From NCBI GenBank assembly GCA_038496445.1, contig JALMLS010000381.1, forward strand, positions 1 through 64,000: 64,000 nucleotides of DNA. The letters run 5' to 3'. Shown one piece after another: positions 6,048 to 43,696 of this stretch (position 1 is the stretch's first letter; every line of letters starts with the position of its first letter). A program made the position numbers and the translations under genes. This DNA comes from Trichosphaerium sp. ATCC 40318. Its lineage: Eukaryota > Protista > Tubulinea. Below the pieces are notes generated by a model. That model was not told the DNA's origin, did not search any database, and saw only the letters and a list, made by a program, of their open reading frames with translations.

Positions 6048-6303
6048 GGGGCCATAGTTTTATCGAATTTTCCGAAAACAAAAATTCGAAAAAATAGAAT
6101 TCGTAGAAAGATGCATAGCTAGGGCAGTCCACTTAACTAGAAAGCGCCTGGTTCACTTACGGTCGGGTCCTCGCTGTGCTCGGAACTAGAACCCGACCTT
6201 CGCTCACATATAGTGATCCATTGGTGGGTATAGGCATTCGGTTTTTGTATCGAATTCTATTTTTTCGAATTTTTTCTTTCGAAAAATTCGGAAAAAACGT
6301 GGG
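6048..6303. mobile_element. MITE-like fold-back element with imperfect ~60-bp terminal inverted TTCGAA-array repeats and a GC-rich internal hairpin
   Basis: 6052-6115 is the imperfect reverse complement of 6234-6303. Internal stem ggtcgggt (6161-6168) pairs with acccgacc (6191-6198). Confidence 0.55.
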
Positions 6304-8129: not shown

Positions 8130-8212
8130 TTGGTGGGTATAGGCATTCGGTTTTTGTATCGAATTCTATTTTTTCGAATTTTTTCTTTCGAAAAATTCGG
8201 AAAAAACGTGGG
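8130..8212 (+). repeat. 83-bp exact direct repeat of 6221-6303
   Basis: ttggtgggtataggcattcgg...gaaaaaacgtggg is identical at both positions. Confidence 0.95.
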
Positions 8213-10203: not shown

Positions 10204-11125
10204 CTATTCTTCGGTCGTCATGGGTAGGTTATCATATAACCAATCAAATTCTTGCATATATTGTTGTCCTACTTGTAAATGTACATTTTCTTCTGATAGA
10301 GCGGAGCAGTCCACAAAATCAAAATTCTGCTGCTGGAAATCACGATATTGACACTGTCCATCAATACCAAGCTCACGTTCGTCAAGACAGTTTGTCTCTT
10401 CTGTAGCGTGTGGGTATGTAGTGTCCATGGGGGTTGGTTCCAAACGATTCATCTGTGATGTTAAGGCGCTGTAGTCTTGGCCCATGTCATTGAGATTGAA
10501 CGCCAGTTGAGTATTATAGGCTGTTTGTGTGGTATTAGTATCGAGCAATTGTTTATTTTCCTCCACTGACGTATCATTTGCGTTTATTGTAACTGTTTGA
10601 AATCCTAGAGAGTGATAAGAAGTCAAGATTTTCTAGAAATGCTGTAAAACATCTTTTTTTAAGTACCCTTCATTATATGTTGCCTAACTAAGCTGAACGC
10701 ACAAGGATTAAAATGCGACGTCATATCAGGTACTTCAGGATGGAATATAACGAACTGATATATGCATTGGCCACCGTGTAGCACTTTTTTGAACTTCATA
10801 CGCTTACCCTAAAAACAGGTTTAAAAAAAAAAAAATTTGGAGAAAAGCGGCTCACTGATATTGTAGACCGTATACAGAACTTGTATAGGTTTCTGATCAT
10901 AGTATTTTTAGTTGTGTACATCTGTTCGAGTGTTTTATAGCTTTCATCGCTAATGTAGACTATGTATCCCTTGGTATCGAAGTCTGTAAAATGAACCTAT
11001 ACCAGGGTGTTAAAAAATACGTTTTGAAAAGAATCACGTGCGCAACATTCTTTTGAAAGGTGCCTGTAAGGTAATACCATCCTTAAGAAGCGCACTAGTA
11101 TAGTCTCTTTTTTGGTGGCGCTCAT
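10204..11125 (-). CDS. Divergent HSF-like winged-helix putative transcription factor, paralog A (4 exons)
   Basis: MSATKKETILVRFLRMVLPYRHLSKECC|VHFTDFDTKGYIVYISDESYKTLEQMYTTKNTMIRNLYKFCIRSTIS|GKRMKFKKVLHGGQCIYQFVIFHPEVPDM...LVRQHIMK|GFQ, then an acidic Q/T/N-rich tail. Homologous to paralogs B and C with the same intron positions. Confidence 0.75.
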
Positions 11126-12509
11126 AACTTGTCTGTTAGTTTGGAGAATGAGTTATTCAAATATTACCAAAAAAATGGACCGCCCACGTTGGAAGTTTCC
11201 AAAAAGTTTCACAGATTCGCGAATCTTGGGTTTTGTGTTTTTCTAAAAGATAAATCTGCAATCACACCTACATTTACAAACACAACAATCTTTTTTTGTT
11301 ACTATTTTAGCGTCATAATTTTTTAGCGTGAAATAATTCACATTACTCAGGAGTTGATTCTAAAAAGAGTAAAAAATTCACACTGGTCTTTCTTGAATAA
11401 ACGAACTTTGTATTGTTGTGTTTGATCATTTACGAAGCGTTACTATGGATGCCAACCAGAACTTCCGTTGGATATCTTTTTATCATAACGGTGACAGACT
11501 ATGGTTGTATTTTTGTACCACTTAGAGATGGCAGAAATACATGGTTTGAACCAATTCAGGTCCAAAAAAACCGGTTCATAAACGGTCCAAATAGTCCGCT
11601 GTCAAGGAAGTTTGGAAAATGAGAAATTAGCTGAAAAGGAATTTTTGTGTTTCCCTTGATTTTTATCAGTCAAAACGGTACTCTGTCACAAAATCTCAGA
11701 GCTGCCTACTCACTGTGTGAATGCACATAAGGTGGCTGTAGAAAATACTCCATCCCACCTGTTCAAAAACGTTCAGAATCATCTCAAATTGAACCTCGTG
11801 AGCTGTTAGCGATGTGTTTCTATTCTTCCTGAAAATACCAAGAGATGTTTGGTTCGAAAACTGTAGTGTACTGGAATTTTACATTGCGTTCGAAAGTCTT
11901 ATTGGTGTGCGTTTCTATTACGAGCAGTTATTTTTAACAATTCACTGAAATACAAGTCTTGAACTAACATATTTCCTCAAATGTCCATCAATATTTTTGA
12001 CTGAAATACAGAGCAATCTCGAATTCTGGGTCCCTTAGCAGAGCTCTACCGCCACTAAAGAATATAGGAAACACTACAAGAGCTCTTAATTCCTTGATCT
12101 ACCAATTGTTGAGGCAAACTTCAATCACACGATAATTGTTAGCTGCAGCTACCAAACTCAATGGTAATTCCCAGGCGCTACCAATCTCATTTATAATCTG
12201 CTCGAGCTTGTATAGGATCTGCATTCATCTGATTTGATAGAAGCTGAACATAGAAGACGAGTACACTTAGAGATCGGGCAAGCTGGTGATTTTTTTCGAT
12301 GCATTAATCTTGTAATTATTATTATGAATAAAGTGGGCTACGGCGCTGGCCTCTTGTTTGAAAAAAAACATAGAAGACGTAGCAAACAGTCTCTTGCGCT
12401 AGCAGCTTTTTTTGTTCGCCACCAAAGCTGCTGTAGTCATCACATGTCAACACCAAATTAGGAAGCGTACTTTAAATTCTAACTAGTTGTTTATTAAACA
12501 TTACATTTT

Positions 12510-13471
12510 TCAGTATTCGCTAGCAAGCACACTATTTTGCATTTGCTGTTGGTTCAATAGCCATATTTTTCTTTCGCTTTTTAATAGCTCGTTTTCTTCT
12601 TGAACATCGCTAAACATAACCAATAAATCCAAGTACATTTGCTGCCAATCACACTCTTGTTGTCCAAGAGTGCTAGTTACAAAATGACATCGGTTGTTTG
12701 TACCATGGGTATAGGAAGAGTCGATTGCCATTGGGTCTGGTGAGTTACCTTTGGAAGGATTGGAAGGTTGTTCAACGCACTGAATGTTGGGTTGATACTG
12801 ATCTTTGACGACATACTCGCCTTTGTACTAAGGATTAGAAGATTCAAAAGTACAGCTTATTGGCACGTACCAGTAAAACAGTTGTAAAAGTATCCATTCT
12901 GGGGTGTTACAAGTTCCAGTATTGTATGTTCTTGTGGAAAAACATCACCGCATGCTTGTATATTTTTAAACCCTAAGAGTTGATAAGTCAAGCTTAGATT
13001 TGCCTTAAAATGTTAAGTACCGTTTATTTGCGCTTGTCTTACAAGTGACAGAGCACTTACTTCATAGTTTGAATTCATATCAGGAACTTTAGGATGAAAC
13101 ACAACCAGTTCACACAACTCCTCGCCGCTACAAAGAACCCACTTGAAAACCACGCGCTGACCCTTTACAATGAATTAATGGTTTGTTTAAGGGTTCATTA
13201 GTAAACACGTGCCGGACAAGTGGACTTGATACAATATTTGTACATGTTATTAGTTATTGCCTTGGGATTCGCATATTTATGGAAAATTTCATCGTAGGTC
13301 TGTTTATTGATGTAAATAATCCAGCCCTTTTGGGGTTTACCGTATTTAAACACAGCCTATGACTGTTAGCGTAGGAGAATAGAGGAACCATACAGCACAT
13401 TGTTTAGCAAGGTGTCTATAACGCTTTGCTGCAGTTAAAATTATCTTGAAGAGAGTTTGTGTCCTACTCAT
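12510..13471 (-). CDS. Divergent HSF-like putative transcription factor, paralog B (5 exons) with C-terminal coiled coil
   Basis: LFKIILTAAKRYRHLAKQCA|...GWIIYINKQTYDEIFHKYANPKAITNNMYKYCIKSTCP|GQRVVFKWVL...VVFHPKVPDM...LSLVRQ. Tail WQQMYLDLLVMFSDVQEENELLKSE. Confidence 0.75.
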
Positions 13472-14789
13472 GCGTTGTTTGTTGGAAAGTGAAAAACAAA
13501 AAAATAGTCTAAAAGTGGTTTGGTTCACATTTTACTTCGGAGGCTAAACAATTTTTGAACAATACCAAATCTTGGTGGCCACAACAACTTTTTATAGTTC
13601 TATGCGAAGCCACATCAAGTAAGGATGGTATTTTTTGTACAAGCAAATTTTTCTTGAACAGAAGCCTAAATTCTTTGTAAAAAACTCCCACAATGAAAAA
13701 ACCAAACAACTGGCTGAAGTGACTCTATTTGTGTTATGGTAACTGTAAAAAACTAAACGGAGCTTTGTAGTAGCGTTGTATTGATATTGTGAGCTAACCA
13801 TTCTAAAAACAGAGGGAAAAAAAAAGTACTTTTTGTTAGCTAACATTCCGTTACCTTGGTTAAAAACTCATCGCTAGTTTCTTCCACAAGTTCACTGTCA
13901 TCGCACTTAGAATGGCAGCAAAATTGTCCCTGGGCTTGTTCACGTGATGAGCACGTTATGAGCATACATGTAGATTTCTCGATGAAACATACCCAGTAAT
14001 TTCTTACACTACTTTTGTAACGCTAGTCACGTGCACATATTATTATGTAAACTGGAATCTATGCGTTTGAAAATGCAGCAGAACCTTCAATAACAAGCCG
14101 GCAGTATTTTGAAAAAAAAGCTGTTATGAGTGTACATTTTTTTGATAGCAAAAAACGCATGTATACAACTCAACGTAATCAAATTAAGCAAGATAACTGA
14201 AATTTATACAAACACATCAGTTTAAACCGGAACCTATCCGAATAATAACATCATTGTACATGGCAAGATATTCGTGGGTTGAGTGTATCTATGACTTTTT
14301 AATCACGGGATTAAAATAAAATCCGGTGTTTACCTCAACTTTGCGGAGTTTCTGGGAGAGCGTCTGCTTTAGTAGGTCACTGAAAGGCGTCTAACCAAGC
14401 CGAATTGCCTAGCATAGTTATTTCCGTTGTATTATGTGCACTAACGTGATGATCATGTATAACAGCGGGAAGCAGTTAAGCAATAAATACACTTCCAATG
14501 GTCGCATGGATTGATGTTTGTATTCCGAATCTATCCAGGTAAATTCTTTGTATATAAAGTCACTTGTCAGTAGTGCCCTACACGTACCCTGGGTACAATG
14601 GAATTTATAAGCGGTTTATATATATTGTAGGTCACGTGATAAAATAAAAAGAAAAAAAACCTAAAAAATTAATCACACCTTCACGCCTTCAGTTCACCCA
14701 CTTTTAGCTCAACCAACGCTCTTATTTGTTGCTAAGATTTTTGCCAGATCTGTTTAGCCAGCGTATTTTTTATGAGTTTCAAAAAATAT

Positions 14790-15700
14790 TCCGTTTACCG
14801 AGCCTCAAAATAAACTTTTGCGGTATATGTCATGCAAAGAGTCGTACCGTACTAAACACGTGTTGTAAACTATTGTGTACACAGTGCGGTCTTGTCTTCA
14901 GTTGGAAAAACTTGCTAGCCGCGTAACGCTTCTACGTCCTTCCAAGTAATGAGACGAACTAAGGTTAATGTAAATAAAGCGAGTTGTTCAAGTGCATGTA
15001 CAATCTAAAGTTGAAAACTAAAAACTTTTCATATTTTATCATTCGTACAACATGCAACTCCTCAATTATCGAACTTATCCTTGTCACGATATGACAAATA
15101 TTGAGATATTCCTTTTGGACGCCTTTCCTTGCCTGGATTATGTTTAGTATTAAGACAAGGAACCGACAGTACAAGACATTTAAGACTAGCAAGTCTCAAA
15201 AAAAAAAAAGAAAATCGACCACTTCAGCGTGTAAACACTAAAACATGCTTTTGAGCATTCTATGTACGTAAAACAGGCGTCAGTGTTCGTATTGTTTAAG
15301 TGTTGTAGTTGATAAAGGCCCAAACCGCTGCGAAGAGTGTTGCTGAAGGTATATAGACTTTCTAGATAATCTGCGCTAAAATATACTCATACAACACTCT
15401 TCAACACTAAAAACTTCCATCTAGATGAAAAATCAGTGTAAACACGTGCCCTTGGAACGTTAAAACGTGCTAGAGCACAAATTAAAAAAAAACATCTAAC
15501 ACCCCTAAAAGTTATGCACGCCAAGAACCAACGCCACGTAATCGATTGAGGTATGTTTGACGTACCCAAAATCAAAACTATCTTACTAACGGCCTTGTGT
15601 AGCTGTTATTGCTGTTGAAACTATGCTCAAAAATAAATAGCGATTCTGTTCTTGAAGGGCGTGGTTTCTTTTTGGCCGAGGACTTAAGTTAACTTCACAG
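14790..15700. repeat. Diverged ~0.9-kb non-coding module, copy 1 (others at ~17830-18745 and a partial copy at ~20850-21000)
   Basis: Shared blocks in the same order: tgcggta..gtcgta, tattgtg.ac, ttccttgcctggatt, cacgtgccctt..aacgttaaaa, ctaacg.ccttgtg.agctgttat. Confidence 0.8.
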
Positions 15701-16692
15701 CGGTGATAAGAGTTTGAAAAGTTATATCCATAAGCAGAGTACATAGGGAGTTGTCCAGAGATTTGTAATCTGAATTTACACTATCATTGCTTTCATAAGT
15801 TTTGAGAGTTTTTTAAGCTCATTATCGTCTCTAGTGAACTGGAAGGAGCCCTGCCCTAACCCCAATAGTTGTTCCAAGTACTAAAATAACCAAAAAACGA
15901 TGACTTTTAATTCGACGCTGTCACAAAAGGAATATTAAGTACGGGAAATTGCAAACAAAATTAAACATACAGAACCCATACCAGACAAATATAGTCAATA
16001 TGGATGCCTCTAAAGCCTCCCCGGTTTGTTGAATCTGTAAAATGTATCATTACAGATTGCACTACATAGTTTGCTTTCCAGCGAACCATCCCAGAAGTTA
16101 CAAACTCTATGTCCAGAGAATATTGTTCAAATTAATCCAGAGGTGCCTTGGTTGGTAGGCATCCGTAGCTGTAATGACTAATTTATGTTTTAAAGGAGTA
16201 TTCGTTCATGCTGATTTTAAGATAAGAACGTGACTAGTTTTTTAGCAAAGAAAATGCTCAACTCAAGTTGTTCTGAAATAAATAAATTCGCCTTGCTTTC
16301 AAGTTCACGAAACTTCAACATTTAACACACAGAAATAGTGAGATACTCCTTGTGGCAAGCAGATTTGGTCTTGGATAGTGTAGTAGCAAGGCTTGTTTAG
16401 TAGGTTTTTGTAAAGCGATCACCTACTTTATAGCCTCTAGAAGAAAACTAAGATAAGCAAAAAAATTACCAACACATTTAAAATCTCAATAGCAGTAAAA
16501 AAAAAAGAACAAACAAAGATTAATCACAAAGAATGTCTGTGTACTACTTCAGTCTTTGGTACTATTAGTCAGCACTTTAAATAAGACGTTCCAACAAAGA
16601 GAACAACTAGTGGTACATATGGAAACCCCAGCCATACCAGTGAACATGACACTCATCACATCAAAAAAAACTAAACAACAACAAAATACGCA

Positions 16693-17123
16693 ATGCATCG
16701 CCTCTTGCTCCTTCTGTTGGTATTATGCTCCTTTACAGCATCGATCTCTGCACTTGTGCAGTTCCAAAGAGGAGGGATTAACATTGCGCTATGGAAGCTC
16801 CTATTAGCACTGTGAGAATGCAAACTATAGCTTTTAGCACCTCAGTGTCGCCATCACAGTACTGGTTTCAAGTATCTCGCCCAGGAGGAACAGCTTACAG
16901 AAATTATCAAACACGGAGGTGCCTTGAATTAGACATCAACTTAACAAATCCTAATCTTTACGTTGGAACTTCTGCATGCACTTTCTCTAACAAGCAATTG
17001 TTCAATCTTGGTAGTGATAAAAAGCTAAGGGCTGTTGCTGGTGGATGTATAACCAGCGGAGGCGCTGGTGGTCGTGTTCAAGGAACTGGTTGTAACAACG
17101 CTCCTCAGTGGTTTCTCGTATAA
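16693..17123 (+). pseudogene. Intronless secreted ricin-B (beta-trefoil) lectin with a 1-nt frameshift after the signal peptide
   Basis: Signal peptide MHRLLLLLLVLCSFTASISA is out of frame with ORF 16791-17123 (SQYW, RNYQTRRCLE, KQLF, GGCI, PQW). TAA at 16779-16781 in the lectin frame rules out rescue by an intron. Confidence 0.65.
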
Positions 17124-17829
17124 AAACCTTTTCACTCAAATAAATGATGCTATTCATTTCACCAAGCCTTAGTTTTTAGCCAAGTTCCTAGAGTACGATC
17201 ATGTTGATAATAAGTTGATTTACGTTCGATTTCATCGTTGTGAAATATGTGTGACTTTTTTGGTCCGATTTTTTATGTGTCACGTGACTAGAAAAAGTTG
17301 ACAAAAAATTGCATGTTGAAACTATGAAAACGCCTATGTCCTTGTTAGCTGAACGTCTTGACACAACAATATCAAACGCGTTAATATTGAAGAAATTTGA
17401 TTGCAGATTGCACGTTAACATATTTCTGATATTCCTGTAATTACTGCGTTGACATTGAATGATTTTTTTTTATTCCGGTTTCAATGAACAGCTGCAGATA
17501 GAAAAGTTTTTGCCACGTGCCAACATGAAGAAAGGCCAGACGCTCTTTAATATCTTTGTCATGCTTTGGAAGTTCTAAAAAATAACAAGAAAGTGATTTG
17601 TAATCAGGATACAAAACGGAAAACTTGCCCACATGACCTTCTCTTGGTTCAGGAAGCCAATAAATATGAATTTATACCAAAATATGAGTGTACAGGCAGT
17701 CTCGAGTTCAGTTGAACCTAAAATGGACGCATCTGTACGAGGGTGGTTCCACTTTGGAAGTAGGTAGGCAGTGTTGGTCAAAAACACGTGAAAAATACTT
17801 CAAAATGTAACGCACTAACTCCGTGTCCT

Positions 17830-18745
17830 TGTTTAACTGTTTAGAAAGCCACGTGTACCAACGGGTTTTTTGTAGGTTAAAGACCACCAGTTACCAAAAA
17901 TAAGCAACTGTGCGGTAAATCTCACTACAAACAGTCGTAACATAGCTAGCACAAGATACTGTGTGTAGAGTATTGTGCACATACTACTCCGTTTGCAGCG
18001 CACAAGTAGGAGAAAACTGCTTCGGTTAGTTTTATCAGATAGATAAAGCGGTGTAGCTCCTTTTAATGTTTCTTTATGTGTACGACTACTGAAGGTGAAC
18101 TAGCGAAAATTCATAATGTTAGTTGGGTTTTTTTACCTCAACTTCATCTGATGAGCTTGCGTATAACATAACGTTCCAAGATACAACTCCTAGATAGAAA
18201 CATTGAGATAGTCTATATTTTTATGCCTTCCTTGCCTGGATTCATGTCAATACGAACTAACCACGAGCAACAAGGTAGTGTTTGGTCCAAACAAAACAAA
18301 AAATTATCAAAAAAAAAACGACATTGTAAAACACTAAACGTACTTGTGGCATTCTACATACAGCGCCAACGCCATCGTTTGTTTTTGAAGCCTACAAACT
18401 GCGTTGTAGGCAAACAAGCTTGTATACTCTAAAAACTTTCGTTAGTGTAAAAAATGGAGTTACACGTGCCCTTAAAACGTTAAAAACGTGTCAGCAAACT
18501 AAACCAAAAAAAACGACATTATCACAACATTTTGTGTTCACCCAACGCTGAGCGAACACCGGTAAAGCATTAAACAGCTGATACGCTATGTTTAACGTAC
18601 CGAAATAAAAACTGTCTTCTAACGACCTTGTGCAGCTGTTATAGCGCTTGAAACTTTGCACAAAAGCACTACACATTTATGCAGGGCTTCTGTTATGAAA
18701 CAGGAGGTTGGCTGGGCTGTGTTTTTGGAGACTTAACTTCAAAAC
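17830..18745. repeat. Diverged non-coding module, copy 2
   Basis: Collinear with 14790-15700. cacgtg.accaacgggttttt is shared with 20876. Confidence 0.78.
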
Positions 18746-18843
18746 GTTTGGTAAAAAAAAATACACTATTTATTGTACAATGATTGATACCTTATGTAAA
18801 TGATGGCGCTTAAACAAGTCAACTTCTCTCTAGTAGTAAATAT

Positions 18844-19772
18844 TTACAGCGTTCCAGTAAGCGTCGTACGTGTGTTCCTTTTCTTCCATTTGCAAGGGGT
18901 CGCCACCAGCTTCTTGCCCTGTGCTGAATCAGAATTGTACTGCTCTTTTTCCGTACCTTGAGGGTTATCGATTACCATTGGTTCAGTAGGCTCACAAGCA
19001 AGGGATTGTGGTTCGTCAACGAACAAGGAGTTGGACTTGTCCACAAATGAATTGGGCGGCGCGGTGTTTTGGATCATAGCATCAGGATTGATACACTTGC
19101 TAACGTTATTTTGGTGAGTTGGTGAATCGTTACCAATCTTTACTTCTTTATCTGTCGAGACTTTAAGAAACTCTACATAGAAAATATGAGTAAGAAATAC
19201 TTTTGAAAAAAGGATTTAGTACTCCGTATGTAGCATTCCTTTACTTTTTTATAGTGATGTGGCTCTAATTTTAGACTCATGTCAGGTGCGTTAGTGTTGA
19301 AAATAACAAATTCAAACAGTTCTCGGCCACCAGCTGTAATTTTTTTGTAGCATCTTCTTTTTTTCTACAAAAAAAAAAATTAAAACTAGTTTTTCCAAGT
19401 TTGTTGTTGTTAAACACTCACAGCAATGCTACTTCTTATGCCGTACTTGTATAAGTTGTTTGTGAAGGATTTTGACGATGTATAAAGTCGTTGAAGGGTA
19501 CGAAAGTCTGACACAGCTATGTAGAACAACCACGCTTTAACGACTTTTATACTACCTCCATCTCTAAAAAGAGCCTATACACATTGTTAGTTGTTTCAAA
19601 AAACAAAGCGAAACAAGTAAATGAAGTTAAAAAAAAACCCGGAAAAGCAAAAAAGCAAAAAAAGCAAACCATCACGCACAAAACACTTCTTTGACAACTG
19701 AGGGTTCTTTTGAGCAAGTTTTAAAACTTTTTGTATCAGAGGTTTATTATTTCTTTCTTTGCTGTGACTCAT
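18844..19772 (-). CDS. Divergent HSF-like putative transcription factor, paralog C (4 exons)
   Basis: KPLIQKVLKLAQKNPQLSKKCF|ALFRDGGSIKVVKAWLFYIAVSDFRTLQRLYTSSKSFTNNLYKYGIRSSIA|KKRRCYKKITAGGRELFEFVIFNTNAPDM, then a low-complexity tail with basic KWKKR. Confidence 0.75.
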
Positions 19773-22701
19773 GCTTTGTTTGGTAAAAATAAAACACACT
19801 TAAGTGTGTTTAAGTCAAACACCAACGATATTTTTCAAAAAACTTACCATTTCTGAGTGGTGAAAGCTGGTTTTGTAGTTATTTTGCAAGTGTTGTGAGT
19901 TATTATCGCCTGCTTTCAGGAAGTAAATCTATAGATTGAAAAGTCAAAGTTAGGGTTCAAAACAACATCAAAAAGTTTTTCAATGATGGAATGTGACAAA
20001 CACGTTCTAGTGGGTTAGTCAAAAAAACCCGGTACACACCGGAGTTTTAAAGAAATGTGAAGCTGGTTTTGTGTTGAATAAAGGGAGTGAAAAACATGGC
20101 GTCAAACAGCCTATTTGAGACTGAAAAGAGTTTGAAAAGGGGTTTTTTTTTCGGTTTCACAAAAAAAACGTTAACTGTTTTTCAAACCACACTTACCTGA
20201 GCACCGGATTGACTCATATTTGCTGCTTACTCCTTTCTGATGTGTACCTCTGCTGAAACATTTCGTAACAACTGCTTTTACTACAAAATTTTTCCGTTTG
20301 GCTCAGGCGAGGCACAGCAAGTCACATTACATCTGGGTTAGTAAACAGAAGAAAAGATTGATACTGTGCTATATTTTTAGCTTAGCACCTATCAAAATAT
20401 CAGATGCGACAATAACGATAACAGTACCTTTTGGAACATACCATAAATTACATTGCTAACAATAAGATTTACTGTTGGCGTTGTTCACTCCACAAATGTC
20501 AACCATTTTGGCCTTTACATACATATACATCATTGAATGTTGTACCACACACATTCTGAGCTACTGCTCGATGAAAAGCGATAAAAAAAGCCAAAAACTT
20601 TTACCTATCCGTGTATCCTTTTGTCAATTGTTCATGAGCCTAATATGAATTTAGACAAACACCGAAACAGTTTAGAAAACAAAAAGCAAACAACAAAATA
20701 AACGAAAAAAAAAACCGCTCCAACAAGGAATCTTCTTGGAAAGCATTTTGAAGCTCTAAGTTCCAGTTCATTTCTGAAACAAATAAAAAATCCTTCTACA
20801 CCTCTTTTTGTACAATCAATGATCCCCTATGGAAGATAGTACTAAGGAGACCTTGTTTAGGGCCTTTTTAAAAGACACGTGCACCAACGGGTTTTTTTGT
20901 CGTTTCATTTGAAAAATCAATAAATAATTGCTGCAAACAGTTGTACAGTTACTAACACAAGGTTTACCTTGTAGTAACGCAGTTGGAAAAAGCCATGTTG
21001 AAGCCTGTCATTGTTTTAGTATGCAATTAAAAGGGACAGCTTTATACATATTCTTGAGGTGTAAACCTGTTTTTGAATTTGGTTATAAAGTGAGTAGAGA
21101 TTATTGCTTGTTTGTGATAAAGATGGTATTCATCCCGCTAGTAGGGCGGGTATGGCCAAATTACTTTCTGACAATACGGTTTTTTCTAGCGAAGAAAGAA
21201 AATAAAAAAGCTATGTTCTGCCACGGTAAACTCAAAACATAGAAAGTTGTGAGCAAAGAAAAAGTGACATTACAATTTTGCAGTGGTAGCTTTTTGTGCA
21301 CAACACGGGAAAAAATCACGAAGTATTTAATAGTATTCTCCAAACAAAAGGATGTTTAGTAAGAATTTTCAGCCTACTGGCATCATACTTTTTTCTATGA
21401 ACTTGGTGAAACAAGAATCGCAAACAATAGCTGGAGGTTACCAGTGTTTTCCTATCTTTTTGGTAATCTCGGTGGTAATTTACTCCGATGATAGGCTCTC
21501 GCAATGCACATTCCAGTTGGCTTTTTGTAAAATGAAAACAAACGTACTATTTTGTACTCCAAACACATGGAAAGGTTTTTTTTAGAGGCGTAATCTACGT
21601 GATTACTAAACAGTTAAGAAAATCACGTTTGTCCTACTTGAAACAATTGCTCACGAAAACAAAGTTCTCCACCACGTAAAACGCCAAGTTGTAATACTAT
21701 AGCCATGCACAGAGCGTAAAGCACTGGTCGTGTATTCTTACCGCAAAACTTTCTCAAACCCTCATCATACTTCAAATTGAAGAGCTCCAGTGGGTCCTAG
21801 ATTACAAAACATAAAGTTAGCCTCCGCTGTATTTGTTACTAACTTTGAATTAAAAAAAAGAACAAAAAAAGATTTGTGGTTTCGGAAACGTAGGGATCCA
21901 TCACGTGATTAAAACGTGACAACTACGCCGCTAATACAAACGCATGGAAAAAGCTCACAGTTCTATATAATATGTTTTACTATGGCTTAAAAGAACCTAA
22001 ACATGTAAAACAATTACCAGGAGGTTTTTAATACAGTTTTGTATAACCAGGCTTTTAATGAGTTTTGACACATGGATTTTTTTTTGTGCCAAAACACAGA
22101 AGAATTTTCAAGCGAAAAAAAAGATCGAAACGGCTTATACACACCAGTCTTGAGGATGTAGATGGCATGGTTTGTCATTTTTCCAAAAAAGCACGCACGT
22201 ATCGTTGGTTGTGAACAAGCCACTTTTTTACCATCGCTGATAGTACGAGCCATAATAATGAATATATATGTCGACGCAGCAGAATAAGAACATTCCGGCG
22301 GTTTTTTTTTGTGCGTGAAGAAAAACAAGCGTAGTAAATAAAAACTAATCTTCATACGCACTAATTTGTACTCAAAAATAGTTGGAAAGGGTTTTTAGAA
22401 GGTATAAAAAAACCGTTACAATTTTTTTCAATACTAGCGTACTCTCACTCCAAAACCGCTCACGTTCGCGGTTATACGTTGATGTATACGTAACAATTAC
22501 GGCTATACCAAAGCCTGCTGTTTGTAATATGGCGACGCACATAACGAATGTTGAGAAAGAAGATAGCGTCTGGCATATTTTTACACTTTAACCCTATCAA
22601 AAAAATTGTTACACGTGACAATAACATAACAGTACCTAGATAACAGCTGTATATCACCATCTCACCATAAATTAAAACTGGCACAATAGTAAGGGTATAC
22701 T

Positions 22702-43464: not shown

Positions 43465-43696
43465 AGTTCGAACAAGTTCGAAAAAAAACAGTTCGAAAAT
43501 TTAGACTAACTAACAGGCGGTTCACTTTCTACCAGGACCCGCTTGAGGACTCGCTCCAGTTCGCAAGAACTCGGTATTGATTCACAAATTGTCAGCTGTG
43601 TACAGAACAATTTCTGAATTTAGGCTTATTCTAGAAAACACGTGATTTTTGCAGTTCGAACGACGAGTTCGAAAAAACTGTTCGAAAAATTCAGAC
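43465..43696. repeat. ~190-bp segment flanked by two direct TTCGAA arrays, absent from the duplicate at 1.4 kb
   Basis: Arrays gttcgaacaagttcgaaaaaaaacagttcgaaaatttagac (43466-43506) and gttcgaacgacgagttcgaaaaaactgttcgaaaaattcagac (43654-43696). Copy 1 has a single array. Confidence 0.75.

Follow-up and report, generated by a model that had tools for sequence, protein, structure and literature searches.

Three spliced paralogs of an amoeba belong to a probably lineage-restricted family with a predicted winged-helix domain

The DNA-binding domain of the heat shock factors (HSF; PF00447) lies in the N-terminal part of the protein, runs through the element order H1-b1-b2-H2-H3-b3-b4 (H, helix; b, strand) and carries a recognition helix with the signature S-F-V-R-Q-L-N-x-Y-G-F-[RH]-K, whose arginine inserts into the groove, and an oligomerising coiled coil is located elsewhere in the chain. 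The ETS (PF00178) and IRF/vIRF domains fall into the same topology class, and among bacterial and mobile-element proteins the C-terminal domain of CRP/FNR, TcpK of pCW3 and the C-terminal helix-turn-helix of Cch/DUF927 are DNA-binding winged helix-turn-helix (wHTH) domains. Here these systems are compared with three paralogous genes, A, B and C, located on the minus strand of a 64,000-nucleotide stretch of the amoeba Trichosphaerium sp. ATCC 40318 (positions 1 to 64,000 of contig JALMLS010000381.1, assembly GCA_038496445.1). This whole stretch, referred to as the window, is eukaryotic, with a GC content of 36% and short GT-AG introns. An earlier interpretation, made from the letters of the DNA without database searches and called here the sequence-only reading, had proposed three spliced paralogs at these places with a common N-terminal domain of about 125 aa and three common intron positions. 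The splice sites of all three genes were located in the sequence, and the common domain and intron positions hold; for B and C the gene models are fully confirmed by spliced transcript contigs, for A in part. The best reading, to which about an even chance is given, makes the three genes members of a lineage-restricted family whose products are winged-helix transcription factors acting as dimers.

The fold was predicted for two database proteins, P0006 (residues 1-135), which is the product of gene C, and P0002 (residues 1-130), a close paralog of A. The AlphaFold models have a pLDDT (predicted local distance difference test score) of 87 and a pTM (predicted template modelling score) of 0.80 for P0006, and of 91 and 0.83 for P0002. 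The two paralogs are 34% identical and are predicted to share the topology H1-b1-b2-H2-H3-b3-b4, in which H1 leads into a long b1-b2 hairpin, then H2, H3, a short strand and a b-hairpin, followed by a short C-terminal helix and strand. The three-helix core, the H2-turn-H3 unit and the beta-hairpin wing of a wHTH domain are all present in both predicted models. When the gene C model was compared with 48,161 PDB representatives using VIA, the first three ranks were taken by the DNA-binding domains of HSF5, HSF1 and HSF2 (Z 4.8, 4.7 and 4.5), which superimpose over 81-86 residues at 16-19% identity with a root mean square deviation of 4.2-4.9 Å and are followed by vIRF, Cch, TAF1, TcpK, CRP/FNR, ETS and IRF. 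The same wide search with the A-like model lists vIRF (4.0), CooA (3.8), Cch (3.8), HSF5 (3.6) and ETS (3.5), and in the two wide searches most of the other high rows are winged-helix DNA binders (vIRF, ETS, CRP/FNR, Cch and TcpK). Rescoring of Foldseek candidates with VIA puts HSF1 (5hdn_B) at the head of the list for either model (Z 4.8 and 4.1); under rank 5 the rescored list of the A-like model consists mostly of kinases and efflux adaptors. The HSF domain, represented by human HSF1 (5hdn, 5d5u), HSF2 (7dci, 5hdk) and HSF5 (8zys), is the best or near-best solved neighbour of the family models, with Z 4.1-4.8 over 81-87 of about 100 residues. The ETS and IRF-type domains (Elf3, ETV1, FEV, FLI1, vIRF K11, vIRF-1 and IRF4) reach Z 3.0-4.3, and the bacterial and mobile-element winged helices have a similar Z of 3.6-4.4 at a template modelling (TM) score of 0.49. 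Unlike the latter, to which they show no sequence similarity, the family members are amoeba genes with spliceosomal introns and eukaryote-type acidic tails, and the domain stands in another context.

In gene A, b1-b2, H2 and H3, which is the putative recognition helix (...NTMIRNLYKFCIRS), are encoded by the second exon, and a basic wing, GKRMKFKK, and strands of the EFVIFHP type by the third. Aligned over the family, H3 and the next strand follow the consensus S-x-[IV]-R-N-A-Y-x-[FY]-[CG]-I-R-S, and the most conserved residues lie in H3 and b3 (I-R-S, R-N). Comparison with the HSF signature is based on the canonical HSF of this genome, which reads SFVR/QLNTYGFHK and whose gene consists of short exons, none longer than 35 aa, together with general knowledge of HSF1. 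A metagenome scan for a transcript of this HSF found none. Ser, Val, Arg, Tyr and Gly are common to the H3 motif of the family and this HSF in the same predicted helix-to-strand register, with a coinciding helix end, and the last strands of the family, E-F-V-I-F-H-P, are reminiscent of the EF-x-H of HSF. The sequence-only reading had described the Arg-Gln pair of the HSF recognition helix as replaced. For the glutamine this is correct throughout the family, where Asn, or at any rate always a residue other than Gln, takes its position. The arginine, in contrast, is kept in the consensus and in most copies including A; it is replaced by Asn in B, C and the locus L014 and by Lys in L003 and L010. 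Judged from the aligned copies, the H3 arginine is probably ancestral in the family and would have been replaced only in B, C and a few others.

These likenesses raise the question of whether the family is a true but extremely diverged offshoot of HSF that was duplicated and radiated in the amoeba and whose recognition helix changed. This narrower version of the winged-helix transcription factor reading is considered possible but rather unlikely. It would account for the top ranks of the HSF domains in the fold comparisons, for the S-x-V-R...Y-G-x-R of H3/b3 and the EF-x-H(P) of b4 that are shared with HSFs including that of this genome, and for an N-terminal domain combined with a coiled coil elsewhere, an architecture that resembles HSF. 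In addition, the three clusters nearest to P0003 (residues 1-122) by language-model features are all HSF_DNA-bind, at values of 0.83-0.84, which lie under the reliable range and serve as a lead only. However, the Pfam HSF model has no match in the family, the wide search of the A-like model ranks vIRF, CooA and Cch over HSF, and the Z scores lie within one unit of those of ETS, IRF and CRP domains. Furthermore, the b1-b2 hairpin is much longer than in HSF, the intron positions are unlike those of this genome's HSF gene, and some 30 family copies stand against one canonical HSF. The domain continues into an acidic low-complexity region and not into the HR-A/B trimerisation region that lies beside the DNA-binding domain of HSF, and the short coiled coil, predicted to be dimeric, is located at the far C-terminus. 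HSF membership fails the only objective test run, the Pfam hidden Markov model, and descent from HSF is possible but unproven. Of the HSF-like winged helix that had been claimed, the predicted topology and the HSF neighbours at or near the top stand; the attribution to HSF is not supported, with no Pfam HSF match and Z scores below 5 that are tied with those of other winged helices. Membership in ETS fares no better: the start of the wing, GKR or KKR, recalls ETS, but the family has neither a PF00178 match nor the R-x-x-R-Y-Y helix, its H3 motif differs, and the Trp repeats of IRF are missing too. Run against the whole genome, PF00178 detects no ETS gene; it gives a single sub-threshold match of 16 bits, away from the family.

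A number of results weigh against the winged-helix transcription factor reading itself. Pfam gives no meaningful match for nine single exons, and for the full-length proteins P0001, P0002, P0003 and P0006 searched at E up to 10 it gives no HSF, no FHA and nothing else of meaning; the matches to BUD31, DUF6274, INO80F and MINAR1 are all under their cut-offs. A six-frame search of the genome with PF00447 returns a sole match, the canonical HSF on contig C8, and leaves the family unmatched. PDB sequence profiles yield weak matches only (CHK2-FHA at E 0.023, BUD31 at E 0.42), and those to BUD31, VPS28 and CHK2-FHA are taken as chance or are contradicted by the predicted models. Language-model features give no usable match for P0006, whose ESMFold model in the Atlas is poor (pLDDT 0.37). 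No sequence method ties the domain to any DNA-binding family. On the structural side, the alignments supplied to AlphaFold held only four full-length rows plus single-exon rows. A mixed alignment that included a read-through row of L003 (exon 2, in-frame intron and exon 3) put the exon-3 pieces out of register and was set aside, and pieces of exon 1, which were also misaligned, were left out. No VIA Z score reaches 5, and values this low, as the tool warns, may reflect no more than a common arrangement. Foldseek against the PDB gives nothing significant for either model (E 0.015 or worse, with HSF at 0.057), and the ESM Atlas shape search reaches a TM of 0.49 or less. Finally, winged helices are also used for protein-protein contacts.

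In line with this last point, the domain could have a winged-helix-like shape without binding DNA and instead be a protein-protein or RNA-binding module of a lineage-specific adaptor family, comparable to those of TAF1, ORC, Roco COR and ESCRT-II. TAF1, Roco COR and ORC are indeed among the structural neighbours at similar Z, and the sequence bears no signature of any DNA-binding family. Nevertheless this is unlikely, as a strongly basic domain with a Lys/Arg-rich wing beside an acidic tail is the classic layout of a transcription factor, conservation peaks in H3/b3 as it does in DNA-reading winged helices, and most top neighbours are DNA-bound structures. Two further alternatives are nearly excluded. 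The best Foldseek rows for the gene C model are I-OnuI-type meganucleases (E 0.035-0.1), LAGLIDADG clusters are listed by the ESM Atlas shape search (TM 0.38-0.40), and the family is multi-copy and dispersed, so that the domain might be a degenerate LAGLIDADG half-domain (alpha-beta-beta-alpha-beta-beta-alpha) and the family a domesticated remnant of a homing endonuclease or mobile element that binds DNA by its beta sheet. This is highly improbable in view of the VIA Z of LAGLIDADG chains, which does not exceed 2.8 where HSF reaches 3.9-4.8 in one and the same comparison, an H1 that lacks a LAGLIDADG or acidic catalytic motif, and the conserved spliceosomal introns and acidic tails; moreover, neither repeats nor terminal inverted repeats flank genes A, B and C, and no flanks are shared among the loci. 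Still more improbable is an FHA-like phosphopeptide-binding module in the N-terminal part. The profile of the four full-length domains does match the CHK2 FHA domain over 37 residues (kfLk..yR..SkkC..f..YldD) at the E value given above, but an FHA domain is built of beta strands throughout, as an 11-strand sandwich of roughly 100 residues with G-R...S-x-x-H...N-G motifs, whereas both models contain four helices with H1 lying over the matched stretch, and FHA is absent from the results of the fold searches and of Pfam alike.

Beyond the domain, the proteins change character sharply in composition. Computed isoelectric points are 9.0-10.2 for the domain, which carries a net charge of up to +21, and 4.1-5.5 for the tails, in keeping with the acidic tails that had been proposed. 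These tails had also been regarded as unrelated to one another, a view that the alignment contradicts: A, B, P0002 and copies on contigs C164, C41 and C106 end in a common motif, C-x-x-[CD]...L...EEN-x-x-L, that is absent from C and P0003. A coiled coil had been suggested for the tail of B; this tail was read correctly, as the frame is open as far as the stop at 12510. Structure prediction of the last 52 residues of B as a homodimer gives a score of 0.43 against 0.01 for the best control, with a partner pLDDT of 77 and agreement between runs; of the solved structures to which the same mark was applied, 21 of 30 homodimers attain it, but none of 23 monomers does. The predicted contacts are in register, as in a parallel coiled coil, and the modelling supports pairing of the B tails. 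In gene C, on the other hand, the nuclear localisation signal that had been read into the tail (KWKKRNTR) is out of frame in the transcript.

It is proposed that the protein consists of three parts. The basic N-terminal wHTH domain of about 125 aa would be followed by a fast-evolving, acidic and probably disordered region and, in A, B and several paralogs but not in C, by a short coiled coil at the C-terminus that would pair two chains in parallel. As the likeliest mechanism, the protein would act as a dimeric, sequence-specific transcription factor. H3 would be placed in the major groove and the Lys/Arg-rich hairpin (KKRxxFKK) would contact the backbone or the minor groove, while the acidic tail may recruit the transcription machinery. 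Variation of H3 among the paralogs (R-N, N-N, K-N) might lead to different target sites. The fold and the dimer in this scheme are model predictions, and DNA binding and a function in transcription are inferred. Under a broader formulation, advanced here as tentative and with less than even confidence, the family would be a new eukaryotic DNA-binding family, an orphan branch of the HSF/ETS/IRF type comprising about 30 genes in one amoeba lineage with a variable helix and a C-terminal zipper.

All three genes are transcribed and spliced to the extent described in the following, and their features are collected in Table 1. Open reading frame (ORF) tracks do not reveal the family, since each domain is distributed among three small exons, and GC-AG introns bound two of these. 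For gene A, transcript contigs cover intron 3 and the 3' end, and the evidence for the GC-AG intron 1 comes only from transcripts of paralogs that are about 96% identical. Over its four exons A aligns in unbroken order with P0002, a paralog known from transcripts, at an identity of about 85% for the domain and 57% for the tail. Gene B is represented by contigs from three runs of one sample that match the window at 100% identity and from which four introns are missing, with joints mapped at 13393..13357, 13212..13163 (GC-AG, CCG/GCACGTG), 13020..12973 and 12870..12821. A relative of about 95% identity, from a run of a second study, has the same joints and one extra: the segment 12703..12656, which is retained in the same-strain contigs, is spliced out in this relative. 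The optional segment is thus exitron-like and is located directly before the coiled coil. One contig from one of the three runs splices upstream exons into gene B, with joints 13462/13565 and 13618/13771. The joint at 13462 falls nine bases downstream from where the ATG begins (13471), and this points to an alternative 5' exon by which the annotated start is bypassed.

Gene C is defined by L026, an MMETSP/JGI transcript contig that maps at 100% identity to the minus strand from 25946 to 18747 and covers the exon joints of the gene, which are canonical. Its ORF encodes P0006 (230 aa), a protein that was returned by the exon-2 profile search of representative proteins and derives from an MMETSP transcript and a JGI transcript contig, and agrees with exons 1-3 of the sequence-only gene model. 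A further intron of 38 nt, 18956..18919, is spliced out, because of which the protein ends at 18830 (...YDAYWNAVNIYY) and not at 18844 and the KWKKRNTR tail is lost. The splice models of the sequence-only reading are borne out as to loci and, fully for B and C and partly for A, as to joints, with the corrections that two of the introns are of the GC-AG type and that C has a fifth exon and a different end. L026 is 5092 nt long and also contains an upstream GH2 glycosidase with a ricin-lectin domain and about 2 kb of apparently non-coding RNA, which includes an unspliced 1.2-kb block (21796-20605) and is linked to gene C by a 268-nt intron (20196..19929). As both genes are on one contig, either gene C is co-transcribed with the GH2 gene by read-through or bicistronic transcription, or two neighbouring transcripts were merged by the assembler.

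The donors of the GC-AG introns all read GCACGTG. They are found in intron 1 of A, in intron 2 of B, where spliced contigs at 100% identity confirm the intron, and after position 1358 of the locus L012; the usual donors in this sequence are GTACGT, GTAAGT or GTACTT.

Table 1. Features of genes A, B and C in window coordinates
Feature	Position	Strand	Description
Gene A	11125..10204	minus	4 coding exons, 255 aa; from the sequence, with partial contig cover
Gene A exons	11125..11042, 10996..10856, 10808..10667, 10604..10204	minus	stop TAG 10206..10204
Gene A introns	11041..10997, 10855..10809, 10666..10605	minus	first intron GC-AG, donor TGC/GCACGTG
Gene A domain core	10668..10996	minus	from alignments and the AlphaFold model of the ~85% identical P0002 domain
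Gene A C-terminal 54 aa	10207..10368	minus	CSALSEENVHL followed by EFDWLYDNL; both conserved in P0002
Gene B	13471..12510	minus	5 coding exons, 258 aa; covered by spliced transcript contigs (100% identical)
Gene B exons	13471..13394, 13356..13213, 13162..13021, 12972..12871, 12820..12510	minus	frame checked exon by exon
Gene B optional intron	12703..12656	minus	48 nt, in frame, stop-free
Gene B domain core	13022..13356	minus	putative H3 ...KAITNNMYKYCIKS; wing GQRVVFKW...VVFHP; from alignments
Gene B C-terminal 52 aa	12513..12668	minus	motif conserved among paralogs; predicted parallel homodimeric coiled coil
Gene C	19772..18830	minus	5 coding exons, 230 aa (P0006); transcript contig L026
Gene C exons	19772..19680, 19574..19422, 19364..19223, 19172..18957, 18918..18830	minus	GT-AG joints; L026
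Gene C upstream non-coding exon	19930..19848	minus	L026
Gene C domain core	19224..19574	minus	putative H3 SKSFTNNLYKYGIRS; wing KKRRCYKK...EFVIFNT; AlphaFold model of P0006 residues 1-135

The cluster in the window is far beyond chance because it is part of a larger family, for which a search of the 70-Mb assembly with exon 3 gives 31 strong matches on 18 contigs. Tandem clusters are present on contigs C106, C113, C70 and C235. Nearly every exon-3 match is preceded in the same orientation by exon 2, and many also by an exon 1 that ends in ...SK-x-C. Some copies are near-identical duplicates, namely those of contig C355 and the window and those of C164 and C184, and may be haplotigs. Searched with the exon-2 profile, 1.84 billion representative proteins contain four true clusters, all derived from MMETSP/JGI transcript assemblies and each corresponding to a locus of this genome. 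This search found no relatives outside the organism and word-based searches added nothing; the remaining rows of the profile search are bacterial AYKWGIRS repeat proteins or long proteins with many short matches and are not relatives. The family is thus likely limited to this lineage, and together with the blank result in Pfam this agrees with the lineage-specific, undescribed family that had been postulated. A very divergent member, L024 (G000:C85:230600-233800, minus strand, 1491-2320), has no intron between exons 2 and 3, a first intron of 449 nt and a coiled-coil-like downstream exon. It reads RGFLIFINETD...FCIRSSDDAGKCQPRKREIGG...LWHPG and may represent either an early branch of the family or a copy in decay; as no clean splicing is obtained for its 5' part, it was excluded as master sequence. 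At L005 (G000:C184:18900-22500), the near-duplicate of the C164 locus, exons 2 and 3 lie on opposite strands (minus and plus, respectively), due either to a local inversion or to an assembly error.

Two motifs, the palindrome CACGTG and TTCGAA, had been put forward as candidate targets of the cluster, and neither is specific to it. CACGTG occurs 65 times in the window against 9.3 expected, a 7-fold excess (maximum 16 in 100 shuffles), in genes and spacers alike. Twelve of these sites fall between 10 and 20 kb, the part in which the cluster is located; two of the sites in the cluster are GC-type splice donors, and 26 of the 65 read GCACGTG on one strand, which is about chance. As it is enriched across the whole window, CACGTG is ruled out as a family-specific site and may be a genome-wide regulatory or structural motif. 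TTCGAA is found 33 times against 18.7 expected and forms short periodic arrays with a spacing of 10-15 nt at 1404-1432, 6264-6283, 8173-8192, 43467-43497 and 43655-43686. These arrays adjoin two Rho-GTPase paralogs and an RTX-like gene, and only two single sites, 11853 and 11889, are located at the winged-helix genes. A scan for bacterial sigma-70 promoters is irrelevant to a eukaryote. Two spacers 3 kb apart contain a 32-nt direct repeat (17840-17871 and 20866-20897, 88% identical) that includes CACGTG followed by ACCAACGGGTTTTTT. The long spacer between B and C includes an isolated ORF on the plus strand (16791-17123) with a weak match to ricin-B lectin, under the cut-off at E 2.7e-5; this ORF may belong to an unannotated gene as one of its exons, or be a remnant.

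The transcription factor repertoires of free-living amoebae are poorly known, and censuses based on Pfam would miss this family entirely. There is also a practical warning in that a domain split over small exons escapes ORF tracks. The impact is confined to one little-studied lineage unless relatives turn up elsewhere. Provided that the domain binds DNA, the known regulators of this organism would increase by about 30 that are unannotated so far, and the HSF/ETS/IRF fold class would gain a new and very divergent sequence family that could be used to trace how the fold diversified and how specificity is retuned by changes in the recognition helix. Should the family indeed be an orphan branch, it would represent a lineage-specific regulatory network comparable to the radiations of HSF in diatoms or of AP2 in apicomplexans.

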